Below the pieces are notes generated by a model. The model did not search any database. It was not told where the DNA came from and saw only the letters and a list, made by a program, of their open reading frames with translations. A program made the position numbers and the translations under genes. Positions 1,861-59,569 of a DNA stretch of 64,000 nucleotides are shown piece after piece. Location: the NCBI GenBank assembly GCA_002269645.1, contig NIVC01000662.1, forward strand, positions 186,001-250,000. Reading direction: 5' to 3'. The number at the start of each line of letters is the position of its first letter. Position 1 is the stretch's first letter. This DNA is from Macrostomum lignano (lineage: Eukaryota).

Positions 1861-1871
1861 GCCATCTGCAG

Positions 1872-5250: not shown

Positions 5251-5543
5251 GCTGAGAGGGTAAAAAACAGAAGTGAGAGGGTTAGAGTTGAGGTGAGAGG
5301 ATAAGAACATTGCGGAAAGGGTAAGAACAGAGCGGAGAGGGTAAGAACCTAGTGGAGTGGATTAGAACAGAAGGGAGAGGGTAAGATCGGAGGTGGGAGT
5401 GAAATTTATCGGATCAGAAAAAAGAGCTGCAATAAATAAGAGGTTCTATTAAAACTCACATAGCGAAAGTAAAAGAGGTGCAGACTGCTAATCCGAAAGC
5501 GCTGACCTTCAAATGTCCTCTATCACGCCTTAACGCTCCGCAG

Positions 5544-11427: not shown

Positions 11428-11614
11428 GTGAGTGCCCGACTAAACTATACTGTTTTAAAAATCTGACCCTGAATAAACTTCTGCCTCGCGAACTCGCTCT
11501 CGCCCTCCCTCCAAGCATGCGTGCGCCGCTTTGTTTGCTCAAGGCCACTCCTCTCCACACAAGTTTCAACCGTAAGTTCACTCGACACTTCCCTTCCCTT
11601 TCCCTTAACAACAG

Positions 11615-23087: not shown

Positions 23088-23129
23088 GGTGACTAGATGA
23101 GGCGACGCGTAGGATGCTTAGCTGCGATC

Positions 23130-24540
23130 CTGGGATAAATTAATGAAGTAGCTCGTATTATAATATGACGTATGATATTGTGAAAAGTTATTTGAAAATT
23201 TCATACTTAAATTTAGTAATGCCATAGACTACTAGAATAAAACCAATGCCATAGAATACAGACTCAAATCAATGCCATAGACTATAGAATCAAGTCAATG
23301 CCATAGAGTATAGAACCAAGTCAATGCCATAGACTATAGAATAAAATTAATTCCATAGACTACATAATCAAATCAATACCATAGACTATAGAATCAAGTC
23401 AATGTCATAGACTACAGAATAAACTTAATTCCATAGACTACAGAATCAAATCAATGCCATAGACTACAGAATCAAATCAATGCCATAGACTACAGAATCA
23501 AATCAATGCCATAGACTATAGAATCAAATCAATGCCATAGACTACAGAATCAAATCAATGCCATAGACTACAGAATCAAATCAATGCCATAGACTACAGA
23601 ATCAAATCAATGCCATAGACTACAGAATCAAATCAATGCCATAGACTATAGAATCAAATCAATGCCATAGACTACATAATCAAATCAATGCCATAGACTA
23701 CAGAATCAAATCAATGCCATAGACTACAGAATCAAATCAATGCCATAGACTATAGAATCAAATCAATGCCATAGACTACATAATCAAATCAATGCCATAG
23801 ACTACATAATCAAATCAATTCCATAGACTACAGAATCAAATCAATGCCATAGACTATAGAATCAAATCAATGCCATAGACTACATAATCAAATCAATGCA
23901 ATAGACTACATAATCAAATCAATTCCATAGACTACAGAATCAAATCAATGCCATAGACTACATAATCAAATCAATGCAATAGACTACATGATCAAATCAA
24001 TTCCATAGACTACAGAATCAAATCAATGCCATAGACTACATAATCAAATCAATGCCATAGACTATAGAATCAAATAAATGCCATAGACTACAGAATCAAA
24101 TCAATGCCATAGACTATAGAATCAAATCAATGCCATAGACTACAGAATAAAATTCCATAGACTACATAATCAAATCAATGCCATAGACTATAGAATCAAG
24201 TCAATATCATAGACTACAGAATAAACTTAATTCCATAGACTACAGAATCAAATCAATGCCATAGACTATAGAATCAAGTCAATATCATAGACTACAGAAT
24301 AAACTTAATTCCATAGACTACAGAATCAAATCAATGCCATAGACTACAGAATCAAATCAATGCCATAGACTACAGAATCAAATCAATGCCATAGACTACA
24401 GAATCAATTCAATGTCATAGACTACAGAATCAAATCAATGCCATAGACTACAGAATCAAATCAATGCCATAGACTACAGAATCAAATCAATGCCATAGAC
24501 TACAGAATCAAATCAATGCCATAGACTCAAACTGACTTAC
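23130..24540 (-). other. Predicted 5'-UTR intron of POU4 paralog B
   Basis: Perfect donor GAG|GTAAGT at 24541/24540 and acceptor tttatcccag at 23130, 42 nt before the ATG. An in-frame stop in those 42 nt shows they are UTR. Confidence 0.55.
23220..24527. repeat. 26-bp minisatellite
   Basis: Unit aatcaaatcaatgccatagactacag, about 50 copies. Confidence 0.97.
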
Positions 24541-27745: not shown

Positions 27746-28589
27746 AAGAGAGTCAGAGAGAGACTAGAGGCAGACAGAGAGAAACTAAAATAGAAGTTCA
27801 GCAACGAGAATTGCGCTCGAGTTAACGGACTCGCAGCACCTGAGTTATTTGCAGCACCTGACAGTTTTATTTGAGGCCCGCAATATGGTCTCTTCAACTC
27901 CCGTGGAACCAGTTAAAAGACCCCGAGTTTTGCATCAACCGCCTGAAGTCAATGAGGGATCAAAAAAATTTTTGCTCTAAAAAATGAAATTCAGAACAGA
28001 ACTCACCGCAGAGGTTCGGCCGGAGCCAGAGACGAGCAAGTTAAAGGCACATAGCAGAGAATTAAAGTTGAGTTTGCCTGCTCTACAACCCTCTCCCCAA
28101 CTTTAAAAAAAGAAGCAAACGTGCAGTCCTGGCTGGTAGGTAAAAAACCTGCAGCAAATTGATGATTGCAGGCGCTAAAAAGTCGCGGCTGCCGCCCCTA
28201 GGAGGGAACTGTTGCAGTCGGGATCGGGGGGGGGGCAGTGCAGGCATCGTTCATATGGGGGGTGGCAAACTGAGACCAGCATGATGTCTGCAGCAGCAGC
28301 CTAAAGGGATAATAATGAGGACACCATAATGAGGGCATTGTGAATATGGGAGGGCTTCAACTTGATAGAGCAGCAAGTCAGGAGAGGGCGCAGGCCTGCG
28401 ACCCTGAGACCGAAAAAATAAACTTGTGAAGTAGAATGCTTTATTCTCTGCTAGACAATCCCCCTCACAGAGTCTGTGTTCAGTGCTGAGACTGGTGGAG
28501 TCCGGCGTTGAGATGGAGTGGAATAAAACAAAATGAGAAACTTTAAAATGAGATGAAGTGAATCAAGTTGATAGAGAAACAGACAAAAA

Positions 28590-31165
28590 CTAAGATGGAG
28601 AGACACAAACTGAGGTTGAGAGACACAAACTGAGGTTGAGAAACACGAACTGAGGTGGAGAGACACAAACTGAGGTTGAGAGACACAAACTGAGGTTGAG
28701 AGACACAAATTGAGGTTGAGAGACACAAACTGAGGTTGAGAGACACAAACTGAGGTTGAGAGACACAAACTGAGGTTGAGAAACACGAACTGAGGTGGAG
28801 AGACACAAAATGAGGTTGAGAGACACAAATTGAGGTTGAGAGACACAAACTGAGGTTGAGAAACACGAACTGAGGTGGAGAGACACAAAATGAGGTTGAG
28901 AGACACAAACTGAGGTTGAGAGACACAAAATGAGGTTGAGAGACACAAACTGAGGTTGAGAAACACGAACTGAGGTGGAGAGACGCAAAATGAGGTTGAG
29001 AGACACAAATTGAGGTTGAGAGACACAAACTGAGGTTGAGAAACACGAACTGAGGTGGAGAGACACAAAATGAGGTTGAGAGACACAAACTGAGGTTGAG
29101 AGACACAAAATGAGGTTGAGAGACACAAACTTAGGTTGAGAGACACAAATTGAGGTTGAGAGACACAAACTGAGGTTGAGAAACACGAACTGAGGTGGAG
29201 AGACACAAAATGAGGTGGAGAGATACAAACTGAGGTTAAGAGACACAAACTGAGGTTGAGAGACACAAACTGAGGTGGAGAGACACAAACTGAGGTTGAG
29301 AGACACAAACTGAGGTTGAGAAACACGAACTGAGGTTGAGAGACACAAACTGAGGTTGAGAGACACAAACTGAGGTTGAGAGACACAAATTGAGGTTGAG
29401 AGACACAAACTGAGGTTGAGAGACACAAACTGAGGTTGAGAGACACAAACTGAGGTTGAGAAACACGAACTGAGGTGGAGAGACACAAAATGAGGTTGAG
29501 AGACACAAATTGAGGTTGAGAGACACAAACTGAGGTTGAGAAACACGAACTGAGGTGGAGAGACACAAAATGAGGTTGAGAGACACAAACTGAGGTTGAG
29601 AGACACAAAATGAGGTTGAGAGACACAAACTGAGGTTGAGAGACACAAACTGAGGTGGAGAGACACAAACTGAGGTTGAGAGACACAAATTGAGGTTGAG
29701 AAACACGAACTGAGGTGGAGAGACACAAAATGAGGTTGAGAGACACAAATTGAGGTTGAGAGACACAAACTGAGGTTGAGAGACACAAATTGAGGTTGAG
29801 AGACACAAACTGAGGTTGAGAGACACAAACTGAGGTTGAGAGACACAAACTGAGGTTGAGAAACACGAACTGAGGTGGAGAGACACAAAATGAGGTGGAG
29901 AGATACAAACTGAGGTTAAGAGACACAAACTGAGGTTGAGAGACACAAACTGAGGTGGAGAGACACAAACTGAGGTTGAGAGACACAAACTGAGGTTGAG
30001 AAACACGAACTGAGGTGGAGAGACACAAACTGAGGTTGAGAGACACAAACTGAGGTTGAGAGACACAAATTGAGGTTGAGAAACACGAACTGAGGTGGAG
30101 AGACACAAAATGAGGTTGAGAGACACAAATTGAGGTGGAGAGACACAAACTGAGGTTGAGAGACACAAATTGAGGTTGAGAGACACAAACTGAGGTTGAG
30201 AGACACAAACTGAGGTTGAGAGACACAAACTGAGGTTGAGAAACACGAACTGAGGTGGAGAGACACAAAATGAGGTTGAGAGACACAAATTGAGGTTGAG
30301 AGACACAAACTGAGGTTGAGAAACACGAACTGAGGTGGAGAGACACAAAATGAGGTTGAGAGACACAAACTGAGGTTGAGAGACACAAAATGAGGTTGAG
30401 AGACACAAACTGAGGTTGAGAGACACAAACTGAGGTGGAGAGACACAAACTGAGGTTGAGAGACACAAATTGAGGTTGAGAGACACAAACTGAGGTTGAG
30501 AAACACGAACTGAGGTGGAGAGACACAAAATGAGGTTGAGAGACACAAACTGAGGTTGAGAGACACAAACTGAGGTTGAGAGACACAAATTGAGGTTGAG
30601 AGACACAAACTGAGGTTGAGAGACACAAACTGAGGTTGAGAGACACAAACTGAGGTTGAGAAACACGAACTGAGGTGGAGAGACACAAAATGAGGTGGAG
30701 AGATACAAACTGAGGTTAAGAGACACAAACTGAGGTTGAGAGACACAAATTGAGGTGGAGAGACACAAACTGAGGTTGAGAGACACAAACTGAGGTTGAG
30801 AAACACGAACTGAGGTGGAGAGACACAAACTGAGGTTGAGAGACACAAACTGAGGTTGAGAGACACAAATTGAGGTTGAGAAACACGAACTGAGGTGGAG
30901 AGACACAAAATGAGGTTGAGAGACACAAATTGAGGTTGAGAGACACAAACTGAGGTGGAGAGACACAAACTGAGGTGGAGAGACACAAATTGAGGTTGAG
31001 GGCACAAACTGAGGCTGAGAGACACAAACTGAGGTGGAGAGACACAAATTGAGGTTGAGAGGCACAAACTGAGGTTGAGAGACACAAACTGAGGTGGAGA
31101 GACACAAATTGAGGTGGAGAGACACAAATTGAGGTTGAGAGACACGAACTGAGGTTGAGAGACAC
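28590..31165. repeat. 20-bp satellite, about 2.6 kb, with higher-order structure
   Basis: Unit tgaggttgagagacacaaac with variants aaacacgaac, tgaggtggag and ...aaaa/aaat. Confidence 0.97.
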
Positions 31166-31854
31166 ACAGATACACTGAGGTGCAGACCCGAGCATCGAGT
31201 GGGTGGCATATGAAAATCCAATAACTTGAAAGCCAATGGGTCAACTCCGCTCTGGAAGCGCACTGCTGCACCCAGGGCCTCGGGACTGGCAGAAGCAGAA
31301 GCTGGCGAGATGAAAAGATTCGGGAGCGAGAGCAGATGGACAGATGGCGGGCGAGGAGGTGCAGACAGTCCATTAACTTCTACATTTGACCACATACACC
31401 CGCGCGATCGAAAACCAAAGCGACTCCGGGGAACAAAATTTGTTGGGAGTGGATGGCGGAAGCTCGCGGATCTCCGAGCCTCCGAGTCCAGTTGTTGCTA
31501 GGGCATTCCCAAGCCGGGCCCATGCAAGAGGAGGAGATGAAAGGATAATGGAGATCTGCAGCTCCAGTCGAGCACAGTCGCACACGCGAGTTAAAAAGTC
31601 AAGAGAGCTGGAATAGCGACCATCCCAGAGGAGTGGGCGGGGTTGGGGTGGGGTGGAACTCTGAAAGCGATCCCTGGTAATTACATACAGCAAAGATTGA
31701 CGAACCACTCGGCTCGAGACTCTCCGCCTCGGTGACAACCTCAACAGAGACAGAGATCGATAGGCATGCTTGGAATTAGCGGTACGCGATAGCACTTGAC
31801 AGACTACTTAGCAGTAGGAATACAAAATCACCAGTCTAACTCCGGTGATAAACA

Positions 31855-33387: not shown

Positions 33388-33768
33388 TCAATCGCTAAGC
33401 TCGAACCGGGTCAGGCAGTCCATTAGCCAGTCTACAGATTTGTACAGTACGCCTTCGATTTCTGGCCGATTGGTAACCGGTCCAGCGGCTCCGCCTTTCT
33501 TCTTTGAGTTCTGCTGCTGCTGCTGCTGCTGCTTGGCGTCGAACAGGACGACAACAGCACAGGAGGCCAGCTGAGAGTCCTTAGCCGCGTGGTACGGCAC
33601 TGTGAACACGAAATCCTGCAGGAAGCCCGGCTTGGGCTCGCGGGCAATCAGCTGTGCGCCAGCCAGAGTGAGCAGGCGGCTCAGCTCCTGCCTAGACGGA
33701 TTGGCGCCCGGCCCGATGCTGGCGCTGTCCAGGTGGAAATGACAGCCATTGAGCAGCGGCGGCAGGCC
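33388..33768 (-). CDS. BARD1: BARD1, exon 6 (second BRCT), terminal
   Basis: GLPPLLNGCHF...LLTLAGAQLIAREPKP...TVPYHAAKDS...SVDWLMDCLTRFELSD* parallels the BARD1 C-terminus (LPKLFDGCYF, TVAYHARPDS, WFIDCVMSFEL). Phase-0 CAG acceptor. Confidence 0.9.
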   Translation of the reverse strand, partial: GLPPLLNGCHFHLDSASIGPGANPSRQELSRLLTLAGAQLIAREPKPGFLQDFVFTVPYHAAKDSQLASCAVVVLFDAKQQQQQQQNSKKKGGAAGPVTNRPEIEGVLYKSVDWLMDCLTRFELSD

Positions 33769-34686
33769 CTGTAGTAGTTGAAAAGCGAGTTATTCATTAA
33801 CCTCCCAGAGTCCTTTCAAGGTCGTTGCAGGCAACCCAGGTAAAATAGGTAAGAAGTGACTCTAAAGATGGACGGGAAACCTCCGTTTCTTGGAAAATTT
33901 AGGAGGCAGGCCCAATGTTCATTTTTTGATATGTTGTGCCTCTCTTATAACACTATTGATATTCATAAAGCTTCTCGTTCAGAAAGTTAGGATTCAATAT
34001 GTTCATTTTTATCCTACGTACATTCCCTGTACCTGAAAATCATAAAAAAGCATGGCACAGCTCGACTCTTTGGTTTTATGAATCTATGTTATCATCTCTG
34101 TTACACATATTGTTACACAGTCAGCTAACAATGACAAAATAGATTCATACAATTAATGAGTCGAGCTGTGCTATGTATTTTTATGATTTTCTACCGGTAT
34201 CGAAAGCAATAACAATTTTTGTGCTGAAAAAATGAAAACTTCCTGGCTCTGACTCTGACTTTGAAACGGCCCTGCCTTTCTTTGATACGCACAAGGACAG
34301 CCCCCATCCCCCACAATCATCAATGCAAAATACAAACGGATTCGAACCCGCGACCTCTGACGCGTTAACCGTCGAGAGCAAATCCGCCCCGTTGTGTGCA
34401 CCTTGGCGCACTTCAAGCGACATTGTCAACACAACAGGCGAGAGGCATTACTGGCAATTCCGCCGACTCCCCTAAGCAGGCACACACACAGGAGTGTACA
34501 GCGGCCCTAACTTTATTTATCGTTAGGCCCTCAATTAGGTTAATTGCACGAGCAGAGCCAAGCCGACATTCCAATTCAGCCTCAAATTAATGTGACTGCA
34601 CTTGGAATCGAGCCTGGGCCGCTGGCGCATCGATGGCAAACCCACAGAAAGTGCAGTGTACATAAAGGAGTCAAAAGCCAGCTCAC

Positions 34687-34923
34687 CTGCAGCCGGTTCA
34701 GCCTTGACCGCCTGGGCCCGCCCGTGTCCGGCAGGGTGCAGGTGCCGCCAACCTCGAACGGCTCCTCGGCAACCCGAGCCTTGGCGTTGGCGCACTGCTG
34801 CACCCATTCGAAGCTGACAATCCAACGGCCGAGGGCGGCGGCCTCAAGGAACTTCAGCGTGCGGGGGGCCGAGCCGCGCTCGTCAACTGACGTCACCAGG
34901 TGGGTGACATCCGGGCCCACGTT
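34687..34923 (-). CDS. BARD1: BARD1, exon 5 (first BRCT)
   Basis: NVGPDVTHLV...RTLKFLEAAALGRWIVSFEWVQQC...EEPFEV. Donor CAG|GTGAGC. An alternative in-frame acceptor lies at 34956. Confidence 0.88.
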
Positions 34924-35154
34924 CTGGCGGGGGCGGGGCGGGGGCCAGGGATTAGCCTGGATATGAACTGTGCCATCATAGATCATACCAGAGATTAGTG
35001 GGGCACCGAAATCCACCCCACTAATTAGAGTGCTTAGAGTGAGAGACACAGAAATCTCACCCATGAGAGTGGAGACTCAATTCTAGAGATTCTCAAGACC
35101 TATTTTTCAGTAATAAATGAGTTAAATAAAGTTATTCAACTAAAATTGTCGCAC

Positions 35155-35386
35155 CTGAACGCAGGTGCCGCCAATCATAGCAGCCAGCTGGGCAGTCAGC
35201 TTCCTATCCTTCAACGACAGTCCTGTGCTGACTAACTGGGGCGGCCGGGCAGCAGCTGAAGCAGCGGCCGCGGCAGCGGCGGATTCGACAGACGATGACG
35301 CAGTGGACTGAGTGGTCACAGGCAGGCCATCCCGCGGCTTCGTGTTATCGATGATCCGGCGCATGGCCTGGCCTCGGCACAGCTGC
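35155..35386 (-). CDS. BARD1: BARD1, exon 4 (linker and start of BRCT1)
   Basis: Phase-2 acceptor matching exon 3. QLCRGQAMRRII...PQLVSTGLSLKDRKLTAQLAAMIGGTCVQ|GT. Confidence 0.82.
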
Positions 35387-35439
35387 CTGTAAGGATTAAT
35401 TAGTATATGGATTAGGGTTTGGAAGAAAGTAGACAGATA

Positions 35440-35905
35440 TTACAGAGCCCACAAATCCCCTACAGATATATTACAATATACAAAAATCCCCTACAGATAT
35501 ATTACAATATACAAAAATCCCCTACGGATATATTACAATATACAAAAATCCCCTACAGATATATTACAATATACAAAAATCCCCTACAGATATATTACAA
35601 TATACACAAATCCCCTACAGATACTACAGAATTCCCAAACCACCCACAGATATTACAGAATTCACAAACCACCCACAAATATTACAGAACTCACAAATCA
35701 CCCACAGATATTACAGAATTCACAAACCACCCACAGATATTACAGAATTCACAAACCACTCACAGATATTACAGAATTCACAAACCACCCATAGATATTA
35801 CAGAATTCACAAACCACTCACAGATATTACAGAATTCACAAACCACCCATAGATATTACAGAATTCACAAACCACTCACAGATATTACAGAATTCACAAC
35901 CCCCC
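35440..35905. repeat. Two abutting minisatellites (31-bp then 29-bp) in BARD1 intron 3
   Basis: tacagatatattacaatatacaaaaatcccc followed by cacccacagatattacagaattcacaaac. Confidence 0.9.
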
Positions 35906-35934
35906 AGATATTAGACACAAAACTTAGAGTTTAC

Positions 35935-36227
35935 CTGGGCGCCCGACCCGCTAGATTAAGCTGATCCGGGTCGGCACCGAACTCCAGCAGCAGACGGGCC
36001 ACCTCCAGCTGGTCGGATTCCACGGCATCGTGCAGCGGAGTGTCGTTATCGCCTCCTGGCATGTTGGCATTGGCGCCGCTCTCCAGCAGCAGGCGGGCCA
36101 GGGCCACGTGACCGCGGGTCACGCATTCGTGCAGCGGAGTCCAGCCGGCATTGTCCTTGCTGTTGGGATCGGCGCCTTCAGTCAGCAGCTGGGTAGCCTT
36201 GGCAAGGTCGCCTCGGATGCAGGCCAG
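35935..36227 (-). CDS. BARD1: BARD1, exon 3 (ankyrin repeats)
   Basis: LACIRGD...GADPNSKDNAGWTPLHEC...GANANMPGGDNDTPLHDAV matches the BARD1 ankyrin repeats. Donor AG|GTAAAC. Confidence 0.93.
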
Positions 36228-36359
36228 CTGCGAGATGAGTAACCAATAATAATACAGGTATTAGTAAGGCCATAATAATACAGGAATCAGCGAGTAAGCC
36301 ATAATAATACAGGCATCAAAGTCACACAGGCGCCAATCACACTGAAATCAGCAGATTAA

Positions 36360-37116
36360 CAGTAGAACTACCAAGAGGGGGGAAAATTCCCCCCCCCCTG
36401 ACAATTTTTTTGCTGCGCCGGAACGGAGCAACGCAGGCACACGAAATTCAAAAACACGGGCTAACTTTTGTTGCGCACCTTCTCAAACAAGAATCAAGTC
36501 GCCAGCTGTCCGAACCATCAAGATATTCGACAACTCTGCCAGAAGGTCGGATTTTCCCATAAGCGCTAGTGTATTCAGTACAACCCATGTGCGACAATTA
36601 GCACTGCGCCTCAGTGCAGCCTTGCCAAGCCTCCAAGTTTCATCAGCACGTCGACCACATGTGTCTGCATCAGTTCTGACTTCGTTGGTCACTAGCCTTC
36701 ACCCAGATGGAGCTTCTGGGCCCTCAACAGGTGGCACCAGGTGACTATGGACATTCTGTTGCAAATGTCAGGTTTTTCTAATCAAGCTTCAATAATGGGC
36801 AAACCTCAACTGCTGGACATCCTCAGCTAGTCAGTCAAGCATTCAGCCATCACCCCGATGCCGTCGGCACCTTCAACAGGTGGCATCAGGGGAGTAAGGA
36901 AACCTGACATATTTGCAACAGGGTGTCCATAGTCACCTGGTGTAATCTGTTGAAGGAGCCGACGGCGTCGGGATGATGACGGAATGCTTGAGAGACTAGC
37001 TGAGAATGTCTGGCGGTTGATTCTTGCCCACTGTCGAGGCTTGATCGGCGAAACTAGAGAAATCCCCCCCCTCTTGGTAGTTCGACGGGCGGAAAAATGG
37101 CTTGGCATTCCTACTG
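36360..37116. mobile_element. Putative non-autonomous DNA transposon flanked by TTAA, in BARD1 intron 2
   Basis: TTAA at 36356-36359 and 37117-37120. Termini CAGTAG...CTACTG, subterminal inverted gaactaccaagagggggg, internal inverted repeats at 36721-37020. Confidence 0.5.
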
Positions 37117-37136
37117 TTAACTAACAGCAATCTAAC

Positions 37137-37421
37137 CTGCAACAGAGTCTCCCCTTTGCGATTCCGTTTATCAATATTGCCGATGCTCCGTTGAGAATAA
37201 TTCAGTCCGGGACTCTGCGATATGCGCGCCTCCTTGGCCAACCGTCTGCCGGTGCGGGGCGCGGTGGCTGCAGTTGGCGCATTGGCCGGCGCGCGCTCTT
37301 GCAGTGGCGTCACGGGCGGACTGCAGCTGGATTTCATAGCGGACTTTCTTTCACCAGTTTGAGACTGGGCTGCTGCCGGCTTTTTCTGCTCTTTGCGATT
37401 GCTTCCGCCTGCGGCTTTCTT
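37137..37421 (-). CDS. BARD1: BARD1, exon 2 (linker to ankyrin start)
   Basis: Phase-0 acceptor ccattgcag. Ends IDKRNRKGETLLQ|GT, matching BARD1 KRNHRGETLLH. Confidence 0.82.
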
Positions 37422-37769
37422 CTGCAATGGTGGCGGTAGGGGTTGAAAGAGCGCTGGTTCTTTTGTGCCATCTAGGCATGCCATGACATGTCGAAATTAA
37501 AAATGGCATAACAATTTTTTGCCATTATGCCATTGCCAAATTGCCAATGCTGAATCCCCAATTCCAAATATCAGTTTTGCTTTTAAACTTGTTCAAATAT
37601 TACCTTTTTTGTTGTGACAGTTGCATGACTTACAATTTGCACTTTACGATCAACGGCAAGTTGCATTTCATTATTTTACATTTTGTCAATGGCAAGTTAA
37701 AACTGAAAATGGCGCAACGATTTTGACGAAAAAAAACCAGGAAAGGCGAAATGCTTATTGAAGAGTGGG

Positions 37770-39905
37770 TTGGAGGGGATTCTAATGGAGGGTTTAAGGG
37801 GATTCTAATGGAGGGTTTATGGGAATCTAATGGAGGGTTTAAGAGGATTCTAATGGTGGGTTTAAGAGGATTCTAATGACGGGTGTATGGGGATTCTAAT
37901 GACGGGTTTAAGGGGATTCTAATGACCGGTGTATGGGGATTCTAATGGTGGGTTTAAGGGGATTCTAATGACGGGTGTATGGGGATTCTAATGGTGGGTT
38001 TAAGGGGATTCTAATGACCGGTGTATGGGGATTCTAATGGTGGGTTTAAGGGGATTCTAATGACGGGTGTATGGGGATTCTAATGGTGGGTTTAAGAGGA
38101 TTCTAATGACGGGTGTATGGGGATTCTAATGGTGGGTTTAAGAGGATTCTAATGACGGGTGTATGGGGATTCTAATGACGGGTTTAAGGGGATTCTAATG
38201 ACGGGTGTATGGGGATTCTAATGGTGGGTTTAAGAGGATTCTAATGACGGGTGTATGGGGATTCTAATGGTGGGTTTAAGAGGATTCTAATGATGGGTTT
38301 AAGGAGATTCTAATGACGGGTGTATGGGGATTCTAATGACGGGTGTATGGGGATTCTAATAACGGGTTTAAGGGGATTCTAATGGTGGGTTAAAGGGGAT
38401 TCTAATGACGGTTTATGGGGATTCTAATGGAGGGTTTAAGGGGATTCTAATGACGGGTTTAAGGGGATTCTAATGGTGGGTTTAAGGGGATTCTAATGGT
38501 GGGTTTAAGGGGATTCTTAATAACGGGTTTAAGGGGATTCTAATGGTGGGTTTAAGGGGATTCTAATGACGGGTTTAAGGGGATTCTAATGGTGGGTTTA
38601 AGGGGATTCTAATAGTGGGTTTAAGAGGATTCTTAATAACGGGTTTAAGGGGATTCTAATGGTGGGTTAAAGGGGATTTTAATGACGGTTTAAGGGGATT
38701 CTAATGACGGTTTATGGGGATTCTAATGACGGGTTTAAGGGGATTTTAATGGTGGGTTTAAGGGGATTCTAATGACGGTTTATGGGGATTCTAATGGAGG
38801 GTTTAAGGGGATTCTAATGGAGGGTTTAATGGGATTCTAATGGAGGGTTTAAGAGGATTCTAATGACGGGTGTATGGGGATTCTAATGGTGGGTTTAAGG
38901 GGATTCTAATGATGGGTTTAAGGGGATTCTAATAGTGGGTTTAAGAGGATTCTTAATAACGGGTTTAAGGGGATTCTAATGGTGGGTTAAAGGGGATTCT
39001 AATGACGGTTTATGGGGATTCTAATGGAGGGTTTAAGGGGATTCTAATGACGGGTTTAAGGGGATTCTAATGGTGGGTTTAAGGGGATTCTTAATAACGG
39101 GTTTAAGGGGATTCTAATGGTGGGTTTAAGGGGATTCTAATGGTGGGTTTAAGGGGATTCTAATGACGGTTTATGGGGATTCTAATGGAGGGTTTAAGGG
39201 GATTCTAATGGAGGGTTTAATGGGATTCTAATGGAGGGTTTAAGAGGATTCTAATGACGGGTGTATGGGGATTCTAATGGTGGGTTTAAGGGGATTCTAA
39301 TGATGGGTTTAAGGGGATTCTAATAGTGGGTTTAAGAGGATTCTTAATAACGGGTTTAAGGGGATTCTAATGGTGGGTTAAAGGGGATTCTAATGACGGT
39401 TTATGGGGATTCTAATGGAGGGTTTAAGGGGATTCTAATGACGGGTTTAAGGGGATTCTAATGGTGGGTTTAAGGGGATTCTTAATAACGGGTTTAAGGG
39501 GATTCTAATGGTGGGTTTAAGGGGATTCTAATGGTGGGTTTAAGGGGATTCTAATGACGGGTTTAAGGGGATTCTAATAGTGGGTTTAAGAGGATTCTTA
39601 ATAACGGGTTTAAGGGGATTTTAATGGTGGGTTTAAGGGGATTCTAATGACGGGTTTATGGGGATTCTAATGGAGGGTTTAAGGGGATTCTAATGACGGG
39701 TCTATGGGGATTCTAATGGTGTGTTTAAGAGGATTCTAATGACAGGTTTAAGGGGATTCTAATGGTGGCTTTAAGAGGATTCTTAATAACGGGTTTAAGG
39801 GGATTCTAATGGTGGGTTTAAGAGGATTCTTAATAACGGGTTTAAGGGGATTCTAATGAAGGGTTTATGGGGATTCTAATAAAGGGTTAAATGGGATTCT
39901 AATGA
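37770..39905. repeat. 23-bp G-rich minisatellite, about 2.1 kb, in BARD1 intron 1
   Basis: Unit ggggattctaatggtgggtttaa and variants. Confidence 0.96.
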
Positions 39906-39977
39906 TGGGTTGGAGGGTATTCTACCCGTAATCGCTGAGCTTCAAAGCCGTCAGTATAGGGCAAAGAATACACTCAC

Positions 39978-40586
39978 AATGCTAGACGTGGTTTTCTTGT
40001 CCTCTCGCTGCTGCTCCGGTGTGGCAGGCGGCGTAACAGCAGCAACAGAAATCCTACCAGACTGCCGCTTCTTCTGCTTGCTAATCTTTACCGGCGGTGT
40101 AGCCGCCGCCTCAGCCGACTCCTGTTCTTCCTCCTTTGTTGTTTCCTCGGCAGTGCAAGCCTCGTCATTACCCGCATCGTCTCGCTTGGCCGTCGCTCCG
40201 CGTTTCCTACTAGCAGGGCCAGACAGTTTCTGCAGCAGGGGTATCAGGCTGCGCATTTGTTCGATAGACGAGTGGACTAGCTGGTCTTCTGCACCTTCAT
40301 CTAGCCGACCGGCCAGACTCCAGACTAGTGACAGAACTTCAGTAAGCGTGTCGGAATTCTGTATAGACTTTGAGCCGCCCCTGACCAGACTTTTGCACTC
40401 TGGACAGTGGAATGCGCCGTTTGGTCGCTTGCAAGACAGGCAGTTTGTACAGATTGAGTGGCCGCAGGGCAGCACCTGGGTGGCGGGGCTGTCTGCGGTG
40501 CAACAGTCGCTGCCTGAGCAGCAGGATGTGGCCTGGATTACCGAGCTCAGCGTCTTGCGCAAGTTCCACCATTCAGATAGTGACAT
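39978..40586 (-). CDS. BARD1: BARD1, exon 1 (RING finger and linker)
   Basis: ATG at 40586. RING ligands PCGHSICTNC...CPEC. Phase-0 donor ATT|GTGAGT. The full join gives a 678-aa RING-ANK-BRCT-BRCT protein. Confidence 0.85.
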
Positions 40587-40713
40587 TGCTATTGGTGGCT
40601 GAAAGATCAATTGAAATTAAAGGATTTATTCTGTATAGAATTTTTATACAATACTATAGGTGAGTGTATTTTAGCTATCTGCGCTCATATAACTAAATCC
40701 ACAGATAGACAGT

Positions 40714-42797: not shown

Positions 42798-43725
42798 CAA
42801 GGGTTGTGTCATAAATTTGCTGACAACTGCAAATATCAAAGAAACAAAACAAAGAACAGCTAATTGTCAACATTGCACTTCTCAAAATAGTCACCCCCAA
42901 GCTGCACACATTTGTGCCATCTCTCCACCGGTCATAGCCACACGGTGGCCATGCGCTTACCTGCTGACTGCACCGCCTTGGCCTTGACCGGTGGGGGTTC
43001 GTGAGTAGCCTTCCAGACGCTGCTCTGCTGTTTTGTTTCCGGTTTATAGAAGTGAAACCACGTTTCATCACCAGTCACCAGGCGGCCAAGAAAGTTGGGC
43101 TCGTTTTGATAGGTGTTGAGCAGGTGGCGGCACATCTGGACCCTCTCTTGCAGTTGGACAGGAGTCAGCAGTTTAGGGACCCATCGTGCAACAACTCGTG
43201 TCATATGCAGATGGTTGGAGATGATGCGATGAATGCTCTTCATTGGTATCGCCAACAAGTCCTCTAACTGCCTCAGGGTTGCTCCATGATCATCGTCCAG
43301 GGCATGCTGCACACGCTGGATGTTGTCACTGGAAGTGGATGACCGCGGTGCACCTGGGCAGGGAGCATCATCAACTGTCTCCTAGCCGTCCTCAAAGCGC
43401 TGCACCCACTTTGACACAGTTTGTTTCGAAGGTGCATCCTCACCAAAGATTTGCAGCAGCTCGCAGTAAATATCAGCCTGCTTCTTCTGCTGCTTCCACA
43501 ATGACCAAATGACAGTGCACTTGGCAGCTTCACTTTTCTCCATACTGGCTAGAAGGGTGGTTTGAATGCCACTCGATTTCTGCCTTATCTCAAAAGCCAG
43601 AGGGAAGATTTTCCATAGACAATAAGATTGATGGTGCCTTAGTCTGTAACAAAAAATTCTGCCCCAAAGTACAAAAGAAACAGACGCTATGTAAGTTTGT
43701 CAGCGAATTTATGACACAACCCTCA
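42798..43725 (-). mobile_element. Internally deleted Tc1/mariner (mariner-type) transposon
   Basis: 29-bp TIRs caagggttgtgtcataaatttgctgacaa / ttgtcagcgaatttatgacacaaccctca, with TA on the left flank. Transposase remnant inside. Confidence 0.9.
42860..43543 (-). pseudogene. Mariner transposase pseudogene
   Basis: ATG at 43543, in-frame TAG at 43382-43384, motifs WVPKLL and VTGDETW, then a jump to the C-terminal RWHKCVQLGGDYFEK in another frame. The rest of the DDD catalytic core is deleted. Confidence 0.88.
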
Positions 43726-49045: not shown

Positions 49046-51584
49046 AAACCTGCGCGAAATCATACCACCGTAAAACACACTAAACTATGCAGCAAGTTTT
49101 TAGCGTTGAAAAAAATAAAGCTAAAAGCGGAGTCGCGCTGAGTGTAACACAACAGCTGCTATAATTAGATTCAGTCCATACATGGTCCTCATGATGGGGT
49201 GACTACGAGCTAATTGTTAGTAGACTCATAAAATGCTCCGCCGTCTATCTTGTAAGCATGCGGCGGCAAGTTTTAAGCGTATAACAGAATTTTTTATGAC
49301 TGAACAAATTAATCTGCGTAAATTGTTAATTTGTTTTAATTAAGTGGGCAGCAAATTGTAGGCAGTGGCCCCACCTCAAACTCATTGGTCACTTTGGGGG
49401 GCGCTGCATGGTGACTATTTTTATTATTTTTATTTTTATTAGACTAGATGCTATATAGATCTCGCAGTTTTGCCCTAGCCCGTTAGGGGCCAGCAAAAAA
49501 GATCGGTGCCAAGGCCCAACATTCCGGGCCATCATATTCCCCAGCCTCTAGCCAGCATCGCGCCATGAGTCGCTTAATTACCAACCGCAGATTCTACTGC
49601 CAAGCAGCTGCCGCCTCCGCCAGTGACGGCTCTCAAACATTGCCATCTGCCAAGCCGCACCTCGCAGTCTACAGCCACTGCCAGCGCTGACTGTATGGAG
49701 CCGTTGGTTAATTGTCAGTTAAATTGAGGGTCCGCCGCGCGTCACGAAACAAAACTGCCTCTCGGAATAGATGGAGATAGGAGAAGGGGGAGACTGAGCG
49801 TCAATGAGGGAGGGGACACTCCAAAATAGACAGAACTGGACTCAAGTCACAATGGCCCGCAGAAAATGATGACGATAATCACACGGGAGGAGGGGTGCAG
49901 GGGGTTTGGAAGTCAGACCCTGGCCCAGTGATCATCATTCATTACCAGGCGAATGAAATATTCATTTGGCTGCTCCACCCCGCGCGCGGAGCCTGGATGA
50001 TGGAGCTGGGGAAGGTAAGAAGCTGCCCCATTCCGAGATCCAACACTAACTAATTAATCGCGATGGACTGCTCTCCTGAGTCCCGGCCAAGCCAAACACA
50101 AAACGGAACTCTTGCACTGGAAGCTGTTTAGTGTTTTTCAGCTATCTCAACCCCTCTCTGCATCGCTGGTTCCCCATATTACCAATTTTGTCACAATTTG
50201 ATGAAGGAAAGAAGCCCCCCCTCCAACCACCCCCTCTGACAAGTGCGGCAAGTGTGCTCCCCGATAGTCGTCAAGAGGAGGTCGCATGGCAACTATTATC
50301 TGTGGGAGAGGGAGGGTTGGCTACCTGGAGTGTGACTACAGCAGCCTGGTTGGCCCAGCTGGGACGCAGGCTTAGCGCCTCCCAGCAGTGCCGATTGGGT
50401 GCCGGACGAAGAGGGGCTGTGAGGTTGCTGCGGCGGCGATGGGGCAGCAGCGGCTGTCAGCATTTATGCTGGCACCGGGGCCCAGCGATGCGGGCACTTC
50501 GCCATCTCTTCTCTGTCTCGACCGGAGCATAGGCATCAAGGTTGACTGACAGCAACATTCTTGAATAGGACGCCTCCCAAACCGCCCTGAGCGTTGGTGT
50601 TTAAATTCTACCTGTCATACTTGACACAGGTGAGTTAAGAAAGTTGTTTATGCATTCTATGAGCTAATGCCTCTTTTGTCTATATTTGTCTTTGTAGTTC
50701 CCTTAGCCTAAAAAGCGAGGATGCAACGCAGTCGTTATACAATAGGCTCTTGAGCAACTCTGAGTGGGGCGAGTGCATGGGCATGGCTAACTCAGCAGGG
50801 TAGCTGGCGCAGCATGCGACGTCCAGATGCGGAGTTGCTAAGCACAGAATAATGAGAGCGAAGAGGAAGACGCAGGAGTAAATGAAGTGGGAGGGGCCGG
50901 CAGAGAAGGGAAAACGAAAAGACAGCTTTGGGATTTGGATTTTTGCAAGCTTTTTTCCCATAAAAACAGGAGCTACCTTTCTACACTATTTTTTTACACG
51001 ATTGGGCTGCCACTCCTGCCAGGAAGGCTGTTGCCAAGGCTTGGAGCAGCTTCACCTTCTTTCTCTGAAGAGTAAAACCTCATGTATGGATGAGAGTTAT
51101 GTCATCGATGCTCCACAATAATCTACTGGATAAAATATTGCCAATTGTATTTGACACAGCACTGCGGAGCCAAAAGGAGGAGATCAATTCCAGCTGCGCA
51201 ATCCGGGTCTAGGCTTGAACAGGGAGAGACTAAGCACACATTGGATTCAAGCCTATTGAATCCTAACTTACAATGTGTGACAGGTGGGCAAACATACGTC
51301 TAGAAAGGATTTAAGCCATTTTGCAAATGAGGGATCTTAAATAAAACATCAACAGCGACAATTAGACAGACGCCCAATCGGCCCCCTCTAGGATCAACGG
51401 AGCTTCAACCTGCAGACCTCATTTCCCTGTGTTTGTCCCTCTTGATTGTTCTCAATCGGATGAAAGGGCAATCCTGATGTAGCTAAGGAATTCCACAGCA
51501 CACACCATTAGTGGGCAATCGTTCATTCCGACAATGTGAGGACAACAGGCGTCTTGGCGTCTGCTCAGAAGAATCTTTTCCGAG

Positions 51585-51594: not shown

Positions 51595-51669
51595 TTTCCA
51601 ACGCTGGCCTCAACTCCATCTGCCAATTTTCAGTCGCAACGAAGGTCGAAGCTGAAACCGCGAGAAACT

Positions 51670-51732
51670 ATGAACTGCGCACTTCAAGTCTGCCTTCTAC
51701 TTGGTCTTCTGGTGTCCGTCACCAGCGCGGAG
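51670..51732 (+). CDS. Multicopy neuropeptide precursor, exon 1 (signal peptide)
   Basis: MNCALQVCLLLGLLVSVTSAE: hydrophobic core with a small-residue cleavage site. Donor GAG|GTAAGT, phase 0. Confidence 0.85.
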
Positions 51733-51801
51733 GTAAGTTTGCAACTGATTTGCATTCTTTTCAGTTCCATTGTGTAGCAAACTTGAACCCTGAAAATGCA
51801 G

Positions 51802-52227
51802 AGGCCGCACCACGAGTACGGCGGAGAGTACCACGCCGCTAAACGGGCCGCCCTGGCCGACTTCCGCAAGCGCTTCAACGGCTGGTACAACGTCGACGCC
51901 GAGGAGCGAGGCCGCGCCGGCCATCACCACCGCCATGGCAAGGGCGAGCATGAGGAGAAGCGCGCCGCCCTGTCCGACTTTAAGCGCGCCGCTCTGTCCG
52001 ACTTTAAGCGCGCCGCTCTGGCCGATTTCAAGCGCGCCTCGCTTGCCGACTTCAAGCGCGCCGCCTTAGCCGACTTCAAACGTGCCGCTCTGTCCGACTT
52101 CAAACGCGCTGCCCTAGCCGATTTCAAACGCGCCGCCCTAGCCGACTTCAAGCGCGCCGCTCTGGCCGACTTCAAGCGCTCGCACCACCGCCACTCGGAG
52201 GGCCACAAAGGCGCCAAGGGCCACCAT
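51802..52227 (+). CDS. Multicopy neuropeptide precursor, exon 2 (10 x A(A/S)L(A/S)DF between dibasic sites)
   Basis: KR-flanked hexapeptides with synonymous codon variation between copies, plus His-rich spacers. Acceptor TGCAG, donor CAT|GTAAGC. Confidence 0.9.
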
Positions 52228-52350
52228 GTAAGCTGATTGAATGTTGCCTGCAGAACAACCTTGACAGTTGGAACTAGGACCAATAAAGAAACAGCATAAC
52301 CTTATATTATGTATAATATTGAATAATTATTCGCTGCATGACCACTTCAG

Positions 52351-52458
52351 CACGCCGGCAAGCACCACGGCGAGCACAAACGGCAGCTGTACTGGGACAT
52401 CTGCACCCGCATGGAGAACGGCGAGGAGAAGTACTACGCCTGCCAGAAGAGCCTCTAA
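52351..52458 (+). CDS. Multicopy neuropeptide precursor, exon 3 (C-terminal two-Cys peptide)
   Basis: Acceptor ccacttcag, phase 0. HAGKHHGEHKR-QLYWDICTRMENGEEKYYACQKSL*. The full precursor is 198 aa. Confidence 0.8.
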   Translation, partial: HAGKHHGEHKRQLYWDICTRMENGEEKYYACQKSL

Positions 52459-56300: not shown

Positions 56301-56332
56301 GGTTAAACAGCCAATCCAGTCAGGTTAGACAG

Positions 56333-56593
<261 letters not shown>

Positions 56594-56609
56594 TTACCGC
56601 TGAACTCCA

Positions 56610-57055
56610 CTATCTGGCCCCATCTATCTGGCACTATATCTGGCACTCTATCTGGCACTCTCTATCTGGCACTCTCTATCTCGCACTCTCTATCTGGCAC
56701 TCTCTATCTGGAACTCTCTATCTGGCACTCTCTATCTCGCACTCTGTATCTGGCACTCTATCTGGCACTCTCTATCTGGCACTCTCTATCTGGCACTCTC
56801 TATCTAGCACTCTCTATCTGGCACTCTCTATCTGGCACTCTCTATCTGGAACTCTCTATCTGGCACTCTCTATCTCGCACTCTGTATCTGGCACTCTATC
56901 TGGCACTCTCTATCTGGAACTCTCTATCTGGCACTCTCTATCTGGCACTCTCTATCTGGCACTCTCTATCTAGCACTCTCTATATGGCACTCTCTATCTG
57001 GCACTATCTATATGGCACTCTCTATCTGATACTTTATCTGCCACTCTCTATCTAA
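56610..57055. repeat. 14-bp minisatellite in a GALT intron
   Basis: Unit ctctctatctggca. Confidence 0.93.
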
Positions 57056-57075
57056 CACGCCTCATATTGGCACTA

Positions 57076-57213
<138 letters not shown>

Positions 57214-57371
57214 TTATATAAACTTATAGAAAGTTACATTGGAGGGTGTGGATAGCAAACAGAAGTTAACTTGAATAGGTAGAGGGGGGGCACCCCCAAG
57301 ACACAGTGAAGTGTAAATAATGAGAAATTGCCGCTGTACAGCCGAGCCTTAACAAGCCCTCAGACTCTCAC

Positions 57372-57687
57372 CTGACACCTCTCCGTCATTCAGGTCCGTC
57401 AGCCTGAGCACGTGCCGTCGCGGTAGCAGCATAGTCTCAAACGGCCAAACAGCCCAAAAAGGCACCACGCAGACCCAGTGCTCGTTTTGGAATACGATTC
57501 GTTCTTCCCGACGGAGCTCCTGCTGAACATAGTCAACCAGCATCGGCCGGTTGCCATTCCTGGCTGCGTAGGCCAACTGATTTGAGTCCTTTTTAGCTGC
57601 CTCGGTTGGCAGATAGGCAGTTGACCAGATCTGGCAGTGGGGGTGCGGATTCGAGCAGCCCATGACGGCGCCTCGGTTCTCCAGAAT
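57372..57687 (-). CDS. GALT: GALT, exon with the catalytic HPH motif (5' exons not found in window)
   Basis: [21 protein letters not shown]...[23 protein letters not shown]. Acceptor ttgacag, donor G|GTGAGA. Confidence 0.95.
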
Positions 57688-57744
57688 CTGTCAAGCGGCG
57701 GTTTGCGGCTGTTTTTAATGATGCCTTTGATGTTTTATTATGCT

Positions 57745-59370
57745 ACCTATCCACTGATTAGAAGATTTCACACCTCATCTATCCACTGATTAGAAGTTTT
57801 CACACTTAAACTATCCACTGATTAGAAGATTTCACACCTCATCTATCCACTGATTAGAAGTTTTCACACTTTATCTATCCACTGATTAGAAGATTTCACA
57901 CCTTATCTATCCACTGATTAGAAGTTTTCACACCTTAACTATCCACTGATTAGAAGTTTTCACACCTTATCTATCCACTGATTAAAAGTTTTTACATCTT
58001 ATCTATCCACTGATTAGAAGATTTCACGCCTTATCTATCTATCCACTGATTAGAAGATTTCACACCTTATCTATCCACTGATTAGAAGTTTTCACACCTT
58101 AACTATCCACTGATTAGAAGTTTTCACACCTTATCTATCCACTGATTAAAAGTTTTTACATCTTATCTATCCACTGATTAGAAGATTTCACGCCTTATCT
58201 ATCTATCCACTGATTAGAAGATTTCACACCTTATCTATCCACTGATTAGAAGTTTTCACACCTTATCTATCCACTGATTAGAAGATTTCACACCTTATCT
58301 ATCCACTGATTAGAAGATTTCACGCCTTATCTATCTATTCACTGATTAGAAGATTTCACACCTTATCTATCCACTGATTAGAAGATTTCACGCTTTATCT
58401 ATCCACTGATTAGAAGATTTCACGCCTTATCTATCTATCCACTGATTAGAAGATTTCACGCCTTATCTATCCACTGATTAGAAGATTTCAGACCTTATCT
58501 ATCCACTGATTAGAAGATTTCACGCCTTATCTATCCACTGATTAGAAGATTTCACACCTTAACTATCCACTGATAAGAAGATTTCACGCCTTATCTATCT
58601 ATTCACTGATTAGAAGATTTCACACCTTATCTATCCACTGATTAGAATATTTCACACTTTATCTATCCACTGATTAGAAGTTTTCACACCTTATCTATCC
58701 ACTGATTAGAAGTTTTCACACCTTAACTATCCACTGATTAGAAGTTTTCACACCTTAACTTTCCACTGATTAGAAGTTTTCACACCTTATCTATCCACTG
58801 ATTAGAAGTTTTCACACTTTAACTATCCACTGATTAGAAGTTTTCACACCTTAACTATCCACTGATTAGAAGTTTTCACACCTTATCTATCCACTGATTA
58901 GAAGATTTCACACTTTATCTATCCACTGATTAGAAGATTTCACACCTTATCTATCCACTGATTAGAAGATTTCACACCTTATCTATCCACTGATTAGAAG
59001 ATTTCACACCTTACCTATCCACTGATTAGAAGATTTCACGCCTTATCTATCCACTGATTAGAAGATTTCACGCCTTATCTATCCACTGATTAGAAGATTT
59101 CACACCTTATCTATCCACTGATTAGAAGTTTTCACACCTTAACTATCCACTGATTAGAAGATTTCACGCCTTATCTATCCACTGATTAGAAGATTTCACG
59201 CCTTATCTATCCACTGATTAGAAGATTTCACGCCTTATCTATCTATCCACTGATTAGAAGATTTCACACCTTATCTATCCACTGATTAGAAGTTTTCACA
59301 CCTTAACTATCCACTGATTAGAAGTTTTCACACCTTATCTATCCACTGATTAAAAGTTTTTACATCTTAT
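57745..59370. repeat. 32-bp minisatellite, about 1.6 kb
   Basis: Unit tatccactgattagaagatttcacaccttatc. Confidence 0.96.
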
Positions 59371-59569
59371 ACATCGCATTGACTGGAGGTTTTCACACTT
59401 TATCTGCTTTTTAAAACCGTATCAATCTATTAACTGATAATTTCTCCACAAATTTAGCTCATAAATAAGCTTTTCATACTTTGAGTACGAAGATATTCGC
59501 AAGCAAGGCGACTCATGTCACACAAGTTGCTACCCATAATTGCGAAGTAAGTTGCAATTCTATTTTTAG

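Follow-up and report, generated by a model that had tools for sequence, protein, structure and literature searches.

What does the gene at positions 51670-52458 (forward strand) of a 64,000-nucleotide stretch of Macrostomum lignano DNA encode, and to which peptide system, if any, do its many short repeats belong? A preliminary description of this stretch, the whole of which we call the window, had read the locus as a secreted, convertase-processed precursor of non-amidated peptides, and had also suggested that this unrecognised precursor might represent a new peptidergic family. The first part of this reading is supported by the anatomy of the precursor, by purifying selection on its repeats, by conservation in paralogues and by resemblance to a nemertean precursor whose processing has been demonstrated by mass spectrometry. 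The claim of a new family is not borne out, because a profile search and the peptide motif both point to the published AxxxDF (ASWLDF) family. We think it probable, judging from sequence, that the locus is an M. lignano prepropeptide gene of this spiralian type, and we lean, with somewhat less assurance, towards common descent with the AxxxDF genes of nemerteans and brachiopods.

Anatomy of the gene and its precursor

The gene has three coding exons that are joined by GT..AG splicing into a coding sequence of 597 nucleotides, which specifies a protein of 198 residues. Both introns are in phase 0, since the lengths of all three exons are divisible by 3 (63, 426 and 108 nucleotides). The first exon encodes the predicted signal peptide MNCALQVCLLLGLLVSVTSA (residues 1-20). 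This was judged by eye from its hydrophobic core and the -3/-1 rule; the core is 14 residues long, and the predicted cleavage site, between TSA and E, has T and A at positions -3 and -1. The second exon runs from a His/acid-rich N-spacer through all ten copies of the hexapeptide into the start of a His-rich C-spacer, and the third contains the end of this spacer, a KR pair and the C-terminal peptide QLYWDICTRMENGEEKYYACQKSL. Read from the N-terminus, the protein consists of MNCALQVCLLLGLLVSVTSA followed by E, then ERPHHEYGGEYHAA, KR-AALADF-RKR, FNGWYNVDAEERGRAGHHHRHGKGEHEE, a block of nine KR units with a closing KR, SHHRHSEGHKGAKGHHHAGKHHGEH and KR-QLYWDICTRMENGEEKYYACQKSL.

All ten copies match the pattern [KR][KR]-A[AS]L[AS]DF-[KR]{2,3}. 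AALADF accounts for six of them, AALSDF for three and ASLADF for one. The gene model of the preliminary description, with its three exons, phase-0 introns, 198 residues and this 6/3/1 tally, proved exact. KR stands on both sides of each hexapeptide, with RKR after the first copy, and a Gly follows the hexapeptide in none of the ten copies; the earlier expectation of non-amidated products therefore holds at the level of the sequence. His makes up 18 of the 198 residues and is concentrated in the two spacers. No family or domain was matched in a Pfam search of the precursor.

Purifying selection on the repeat units

Repeats of this kind could in principle have nothing to do with a protein. Tandem Repeats Finder (TRF) reports the coding block as 9.2 copies of a 24-bp unit (85% matches), minisatellites crowd the window, and the repeat is open on the antisense strand as well. 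The locus might then be a GC-rich minisatellite that is open in one frame and flanked by fortuitous splice-like sites, rather than a gene. The variation among the ten 24-nucleotide units, however, is confined to positions that spare the protein. Of the variable columns, seven are third positions and three are first positions, while second positions never vary; the first-position changes are one synonymous Leu change (CTN/TTA) and two Ala/Ser exchanges. K is written AAA or AAG, R is CGC, CGT or CGG, L is CTG, CTT, CTA or TTA, D is GAC or GAT, and F is TTC or TTT. In pairwise comparisons among the units, the proportion of synonymous differences (pS) was 0.518 and that of non-synonymous differences (pN) was 0.039, a pN/pS of 0.075. 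Relative to the unit consensus there are 25 nucleotide differences, and they alter only 4 residues, in each case from Ala to Ser, whereas a random-mutation null with an equal number of changes gave 17.5±2.1 residue changes and none of 20,000 simulations went as low as 4 (P < 5e-5).

The KR pair is invariant as protein and as strictly kept as the hexapeptide, despite variation in its codons. Drift that is almost wholly synonymous, combined with an invariant KR and a hexapeptide that varies by Ala/Ser exchanges alone, shows that this is a coding repeat under purifying selection and not a translated minisatellite. Protein-level selection on synonymously varying copies had been proposed in the preliminary description, and the pN/pS of the units and their deficit of residue changes bear it out. 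The in-frame ATG, the signal peptide, the stop codon and the two introns, both canonical and in phase 0, likewise argue for a gene, as do a paralogue elsewhere with the same exon structure and diverged spacers, and independent public gene models that use the same junctions. The suggestion that there is no gene here is, in our view, effectively refuted.

Paralogues and the public gene model

A single-sequence homology search matched only three M. lignano paralogues, BOX15_Mlig019341g1, BOX15_Mlig008925g1 and A0A1I8G648, which are labelled 'hypothetical protein' or 'Conserved secreted protein'. At two paralogue loci, L001 and L002, a signal-peptide exon ending in ...AAAE is followed by a phase-0 intron, a repeat exon, a second phase-0 intron that lies in a His-rich spacer, and a last exon that encodes KR-SYYWDVCSHWINGRERLYVCKKQIR. 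The repeat exon carries 8-11 KR/RR-flanked copies of AALADF, AALSDF or ASLSDF. These genes of the same species resemble the window gene in the three-exon phase-0 layout, the AALADF/AALSDF peptides, the His-rich spacers and a C-terminal YWDxC...NGxE..YxCxK peptide. They differ from it in having 8-11 copies rather than 10, in lacking the isolated first copy, which appears as a gap in the alignment, and in having RR instead of KR at the first site.

Identity between the window protein and the paralogue is very uneven. It amounts to 39% in the signal peptide, 33% in the N-spacer, 88% in the repeat block, 16% in the C-spacer and 46% in the C-terminal peptide. Between paralogues, the repeats have a pS of 0.605, which is near saturation, and a pN of 0.048. 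From repeats that are 88% identical beside spacers at 16-33%, and from this pS and pN, it follows that selection maintains the hexapeptides with their KR borders and, to a lesser degree, the C-terminal peptide. Conserved repeats, drifted flanks and a varying copy number are the usual signature of a multicopy prohormone, and the sequences of these genes are consistent with it.

The spacers invite a different use of the same precursor chemistry. Their His-richness (18 His in 198 residues, in two spacers) is kept in the paralogue although their sequence is not, the C-terminal hairpin is conserved, and the UniProt label of one paralogue says only 'Conserved secreted protein'. Many repetitive secreted proteins are expressed in the prostate and adhesive glands of M. 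lignano. The gene might thus have a non-neuronal role and supply a gland or other exocrine secretion, for example a pheromone, a peptide of the seminal fluid or of the adhesive glands, or a mixture for host defence. The active parts would then be the Cys hairpin or the His-rich fragments (histatin-like, metal-binding), and the anionic hexapeptides would be spacers or pro-regions. We consider such a role unlikely. The strongest conservation falls on the hexapeptides and their KR pairs and not on the spacers, a net-anionic hexapeptide kept ten times over under purifying selection does not resemble a mere spacer, and the closest relatives of the gene are catalogued as neuropeptide precursors that were identified in a neuropeptidomic screen.

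The neighbours of the two kinds of locus differ: an Ank-repeat gene and an abhydrolase lie beside the paralogues, and a BARD1-like gene and GALT lie beside the window gene. Except for one shared dispersed minisatellite, no synteny was found between the window and the paralogue loci. This minisatellite has a 65-bp unit and is 79-88% identical to an array at L001 15113-15450, about 4 kb downstream of the paralogous gene, which suggests a dispersed repeat family and not synteny. Intron 1 of the paralogue (L001 10067-10345) holds a minisatellite with a 24-bp period (CCCTGACAATGGCCACTGAACCAG...) that is absent from intron 1 of the window gene.

The window gene itself is present in the public databases in a distorted form. 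UniProt entry A0A1I8IA06 (M. lignano, 900 residues), which an exhaustive profile search returned, holds residues 1-190 of the precursor without mismatch, with both splice junctions included, and its other exons map elsewhere in the window (Table 1). This entry is a chimera in which unrelated upstream and downstream pieces are fused to the precursor minus its last 8 residues. It exits the true frame eight residues before the stop codon, its colinearity with the window breaks at ...GKS/QRRSKLKPRET-MNCAL, and its name, 'Inhibitor_I29 domain-containing protein', was taken from an unrelated domain. Downstream, its pieces run across a minisatellite and, in antisense, across a GALT exon. Because A0A1I8IA06 is a misnamed chimera and the paralogues are called 'hypothetical', homology-based neuropeptide surveys would miss these genes.

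Match to the AxxxDF family

The AxxxDF peptides were described by Thiel et al. (2021, Mol Biol Evol 38:4847; PMC8557429), who spoke of an ASWLDF precursor in the preprint and of the AxxxDF family in the published paper. According to the portions of that paper available to us, the nemertean peptides are ASWLDF, ASWLDM, ASWIDT and ATWHDF, and the brachiopod (linguliform) peptides are AKFNDF, AKFVDF and AKFFDF, which stand in gap-free KRAKFNDFKRAKFNDF tandems. Mass spectrometry of Lineus is reported there to have recovered linker peptides such as GNTGDLKPWLEN; as the predicted dibasic sites flank these linkers, the Lineus precursor is cut beside its hexapeptides. The same portions name no receptor or function for AxxxDF, so the orphan receptor foreseen in the preliminary description still stands.

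In a profile search of 1.84 billion proteins, the Lineus longissimus protein XP_064647831.1, with ten copies of KR-ASWLDF-KR, was matched with an E-value of 4.9e-11, although only the repeats align and their repetition inflates E-values. Comparison of the Macrostomum sequences with an alignment of nemertean and brachiopod AxxxDF precursors by hhalign gave a probability of 96.8% and an E-value of 2.5e-10, where again only the eight-residue repeat aligns and repetition inflates the scores. The common motif A-x-x-x-D-F is present in all ten window copies, as A[AS]L[AS]DF. The window precursor also shares the other traits of the family, namely dibasic-flanked non-amidated hexamers, multiple copies, a signal peptide, and a short precursor without other domains. 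In copy number and size it is comparable to the AxxxDF precursors described by Thiel et al., for which the available portions give 4-14 copies between KR/KK sites and 180-290 residues, and its nine-unit block is like the gap-free KR-to-KR tandems of Lingula reported there.

The Lineus gene has three coding exons, with phase-0 introns between E29 and V30 (6 residues past the signal peptide) and between E241 and M242 (before the tail). Its layout is the same as that of the window gene: signal peptide, repeats and tail are separated by two introns, both in phase 0. This agreement lends weak support to a relationship, because the layout is common among neuropeptide genes.

The profile search also matched environmental precursors of two kinds, one with five to six copies of KR-ASW[AS]DM-KR (P0030 and P0053) and the other with KR-[AST]xLNDF-KR (P0046, P0089, P0131 and P0132). 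Their sources are JGI 3300030743 (Ga0265461_10741996), Logan SRR22388065 and ENA assemblies; the JGI and Logan sequences are short eukaryotic contigs that encode a signal peptide and KR-ASW[AS]DM-KR x5-6. Like the window precursor, the environmental ones are short, have a signal peptide and contain non-amidated hexapeptides between KR sites, with D-F or D-M as the last two residues. Unlike it, they are without His-rich spacers and without a Cys hairpin, and some have a C-terminal Met in place of Phe. ASWADM differs from the window peptide ASLADF at two positions, and the environmental xxLNDF forms also have Leu at position 3. By sequence, ASWADM/ASWSDM and the [AST]xLNDF peptides bridge ASWLDF/ASWLDM and ASLADF. 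An alignment-based, word-indexed search added nothing beyond ENA proteins; because it missed even Lineus, its silence on other organisms carries little weight.

Common descent or convergence

Several observations count against placing the window gene in the AxxxDF family. All ten window copies have Leu at position 3, where the described members, in the available portions of Thiel et al., have Trp or Phe, although this position is not listed there as defining; the middle residues as a whole are A/S-L-A/S in the window peptides and S-W-L or K-F-N in the published ones. The spacers are His-rich and basic in Macrostomum but acidic in nemerteans and brachiopods, and His-rich spacers are unusual for neuropeptide precursors. 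Other AxxxDF precursors have nothing that corresponds to the C-terminal two-Cys hairpin peptide; the nemertean one ends in a helical tail (...TIKVIREMLLKDK...). Outside the repeats, the signal peptide, the spacers and the C-terminus cannot be aligned with those of other AxxxDF precursors, and a three-residue motif could arise by convergence. In the prohormone tables of Schmidtea (Collins et al. 2010; 51 genes, eight supplementary files), the strings ADFKR, SDFKR, DFKR, LADF and LSDF have 0 occurrences, and the cestode set of neuropeptide precursors contains no multicopy KR-AxxxDF-KR, its sole DF-ending site being KR-WTDF-KKR in Npp-37. Finally, the exact 198-residue protein was sought in a collection of 15 billion proteins and not found, and no full-length assembled transcript was seen.

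Could the resemblance then be coincidental? A convergent, Macrostomum-specific peptide family would be a genuine multicopy prohormone with no common origin with AxxxDF. It would account for a similarity that is limited to KR-A...DF-KR, for the unique spacers and hairpin, for the different middle residues and for the absence of the multicopy form from the planarian and cestode sets, and it would agree with Thiel et al., who themselves, in the portions available, call AxxxDF a lineage-specific innovation. We regard convergence as possible but doubtful, because all four formal features of AxxxDF occur in ten of ten copies and because intermediates exist (ASWLDM, ASWADM/ASWSDM, ASLADF). In addition, brachiopods have the same gap-free KR tandems, Lineus has the same three-exon phase-0/phase-0 layout, and a random hexapeptide would have A1, D5 and F6 with a probability of about 2e-4, a rough estimate from typical residue frequencies. 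We therefore favour an AxxxDF-type gene, and whether the likeness came about by descent or by convergence, the gene would be predicted to work like an AxxxDF precursor.

Predicted structure and the C-terminal peptide

AlphaFold2 was run on an alignment of four sequences and returned a low-confidence model of the precursor with no globular fold (mean predicted local distance difference test score (pLDDT) 57, predicted template modelling score (pTM) 0.22). The model places a helix at residues 3-17, in the signal peptide, gives the His-rich spacers a pLDDT below 50, and forms a beta-hairpin at residues 176-197 (pLDDT 73-80) in which the two cysteines would come to lie close to each other. The pattern Y-W-D-x-C-x4-N-G-x-E-x2-Y-x-C-x-K is common to the C-terminal peptides of the window gene and the paralogue, with identical spacing of the Cys residues. 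Two features are specific to Macrostomum: the His-rich spacers and a conserved C-terminal peptide of 24 residues with two Cys, predicted to be a hairpin.

One part of the model sits badly with a precursor that is cut into hexapeptides, and belongs with the adverse points above: the repeat region, residues 68-150, is drawn as one continuous helix (pLDDT 60-76). An unprocessed secreted repeat protein, with a long Ala/Leu-rich helix and His-rich metal-binding tails, would have such a shape and could serve a structural, matrix or metal-handling role. Its tails would bind Zn, Ni or Cu, and purifying selection on the repeats is expected here too. Even so, we find this reading very improbable. A period of eight residues gives neither a stable amphipathic face nor a coiled-coil heptad, and the pTM is low; a canonical KR convertase site bounds every unit, and the isolated first copy is KR/RKR-flanked as well. 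Moreover, the homologous-looking nemertean precursors are demonstrably cut at such sites, and the copy number varies freely (8-11).

The gene in its surroundings

The positions of the features are listed in Table 1. A TATA-like element lies 5' of the ATG and is a putative core-promoter element. The 5' leader contains an acceptor-like ttttcag, which the A0A1I8IA06 model uses to join its upstream exons; it could alternatively be a trans-splice acceptor.

The preliminary description had placed the gene among DNA minisatellites, and they are indeed very dense, with 92 TRF rows, units of 14-36 bp and up to 129 copies. Many of them make long spurious open reading frames (ORFs) on both strands. Two single-exon ORFs that encode a POU domain and a homeodomain are convergent (tail-to-tail) about 9 kb apart and look like an inverted duplicate of POU-class transcription factor genes. 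Near the window start lie a Bcl-2 family ORF with a full domain (Pfam E 2.5e-29) and a Bak-like BH3 motif (IGRRLAEIGDEI), and a WD40-repeat ORF. On the reverse strand, a BARD1-like gene is suggested by exons that carry ankyrin repeats, a RING finger and a weak BRCT match; a 2.1-kb minisatellite lies between these exons. A mariner-type transposase-like fragment gave a weak Pfam Transposase_1 match below the gathering score, and an exon of galactose-1-phosphate uridylyltransferase (GALT) lies downstream of the precursor gene. Rfam and tRNA scans of the window found nothing.

Table 1. Positions of the precursor gene, the pieces of its public gene model and the neighbouring features in the window
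Feature	Position	Strand	Remarks
TATA-like element TATATATAAA	51585-51594	+	76 nt 5' of the ATG; read from the sequence; core-promoter role putative
Acceptor-like ttttcag	51632-51638	+	in the 5' leader
Coding exon 1	51670-51732	+	ATG at 51670; Met1-Glu21; ends GAG, donor GTAAGT
Intron 1	51733-51801	+	69 nt, GT..AG, phase 0, ends TGCAG
Coding exon 2	51802-52227	+	residues 22-163; ends CAT, donor GTAAGC; inside ORF 51796-52236
Isolated first copy, KR-AALADF-RKR	51841-51873	+	residues 35-45; hexapeptide at residues 37-42
Tandem block, nine KR-A[AS]L[AS]DF units and closing KR	51958-52179	+	residues 74-147, without spacers; the TRF block of 24-bp units
Intron 2	52228-52350	+	123 nt, GT..AG, phase 0, acceptor TTCAG; inside the His-rich C-spacer
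Coding exon 3	52351-52458	+	residues 164-198 and stop TAA
KR before the C-terminal peptide	52378-52383	+	
C-terminal peptide	52384-52455	+	
A0A1I8IA06, upstream piece	49593-50050		94-100% identity
A0A1I8IA06, precursor piece	51631-52431		
A0A1I8IA06, downstream piece	56321-56539		with the next piece maps to 56321-57576, 94-100% identity
A0A1I8IA06, downstream piece	57472-57576		
Bcl-2 family ORF	1788-2288	+	
Minisatellite shared with L001	2869-3067		65-bp unit
WD40-repeat ORF	5436-6680	+	
Minisatellite	6749-8664		
POU and homeodomain ORF	11609-12793	+	single exon
POU and homeodomain ORF	22011-23117	-	single exon
Minisatellite	23218-24527		
Minisatellite	28581-31166		
BARD1-like exons	33391-40616	-	
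Minisatellite	37765-39924		23-bp unit, between BARD1-like exons
Mariner-type transposase-like fragment	42935-43381	-	
GALT exon	57352-57690	-	HPH motif region
Minisatellite	57747-59405		

A proposed model for the processing of the precursor

The gene structure, the architecture of the precursor, the selection on KR-peptide units, the conservation of the paralogues and the match to AxxxDF in motif and layout are established here, and they form the basis of a model in which secretion, cleavage, neuronal or endocrine expression and bioactivity are predicted from the sequence. We propose that the signal peptide would direct the 198-residue product into the secretory pathway. A convertase of the PC2/PC1 type would then cleave after each KR or RKR, and the basic residues would be trimmed by a carboxypeptidase-E-like enzyme. 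M. lignano possesses such processing machinery: Arbore et al. (2015, PMC4490696) describe a PC2 homologue with expression in the nervous system, which the animal requires for its post-embryonic development.

The products of these steps would be the hexapeptides AALADF (six copies), AALSDF (three) and ASLADF (one), as free acids because there is no Gly donor. We propose that they are the selected and presumably bioactive units and that they act on a receptor. Three His- or acid-rich linker peptides and the C-terminal two-Cys peptide of 24 residues would also be released. The latter is probably a disulfide-stapled hairpin, and it may carry a pyroglutamate since Gln begins the peptide after KR. 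The His-rich spacers, which would be sensitive to pH or metal, and the disulfide hairpin may be co-released actives or a granule-sorting module. They are modest curiosities that might bear on precursor sorting or granule packing.

Comparison with other peptide systems

Other families were considered as relatives of the window peptides and set aside. Amidated spiralian families (FMRFamide, MIP/Wamide, myomodulin and others) need a C-terminal Gly donor, which 0 of the window copies have. The 'WLD' precursor of Platynereis, considered as an annelid counterpart, is described as Platynereis-specific and Cys-containing; no link with it is claimed. Achatin and the Aplysia achatin-like peptides (GFAD, GFFD), together with further short acidic peptides of Spiralia that lack amidation, offer a functional analogy, being multicopy, KR-flanked, non-amidated and Asp-containing spiralian peptides. 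The achatin family, however, consists of tetrapeptides of the form G-[FY]-x-D with an N-terminal Gly and a C-terminal Asp, whereas the window peptides are hexamers running from Ala to Phe, and there is no sequence relationship.

A search of the literature for the strings AALADF, AALSDF and ASLADF returned only AALSDF, inside an Aplysia peptide, plus one unrelated paper. The Aplysia peptide is the D-amino-acid-containing SYADSKDEESNAALSDFA from an achatin-like precursor (ALNP; PMC11277431), and the overlap is probably a coincidence because AALSDF is not dibasic-flanked there.

Among flatworms, the planarian prohormone family table contains nothing comparable to DF-KR repeat peptides. In Taenia crassiceps, the KR-WTDF-KKR site of Npp-37 (PMC11196405, supplementary file 2) occurs once, and its ending recalls the ...WLDF of ASWLDF. 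This may be chance, or Npp-37 might be a flatworm relative of AxxxDF in degenerate form. We found no report of AxxxDF in flatworms in the literature and databases searched, a coverage that leaves outside the listings of Macrostomum neuropeptide precursors derived from expressed sequence tags, and the literature searched yielded no single-cell or neuropeptide atlas of Macrostomum.

In that literature, as far as its text was available, AxxxDF is the subject of one comparative neuropeptidomics paper only, where it is treated as an invention of nemerteans and brachiopods, and none is reported from annelids or molluscs. With an AxxxDF-type precursor in M. lignano, at no fewer than two paralogous loci, Platyhelminthes would join the phyla that have the family, and the family's origin would shift back towards the base of Spiralia. 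The family would also become accessible in a laboratory animal for which RNAi, transgenesis and regeneration assays exist. More tentatively, AxxxDF could be an ancient system of Spiralia, still present in an early-branching flatworm but lost, or no longer recognisable, in planarians and parasitic flatworms, the Macrostomum precursor having gained its hairpin and His-rich spacers; we see this as possible rather than probable. If it is true, M. lignano would offer the first opportunity to work out what AxxxDF does and which receptor it acts on. In sum, the comparison suggests that the window gene does not represent a new system. It would be an AxxxDF-type precursor in Platyhelminthes, a new phylum for a published family, with two lineage-specific additions.

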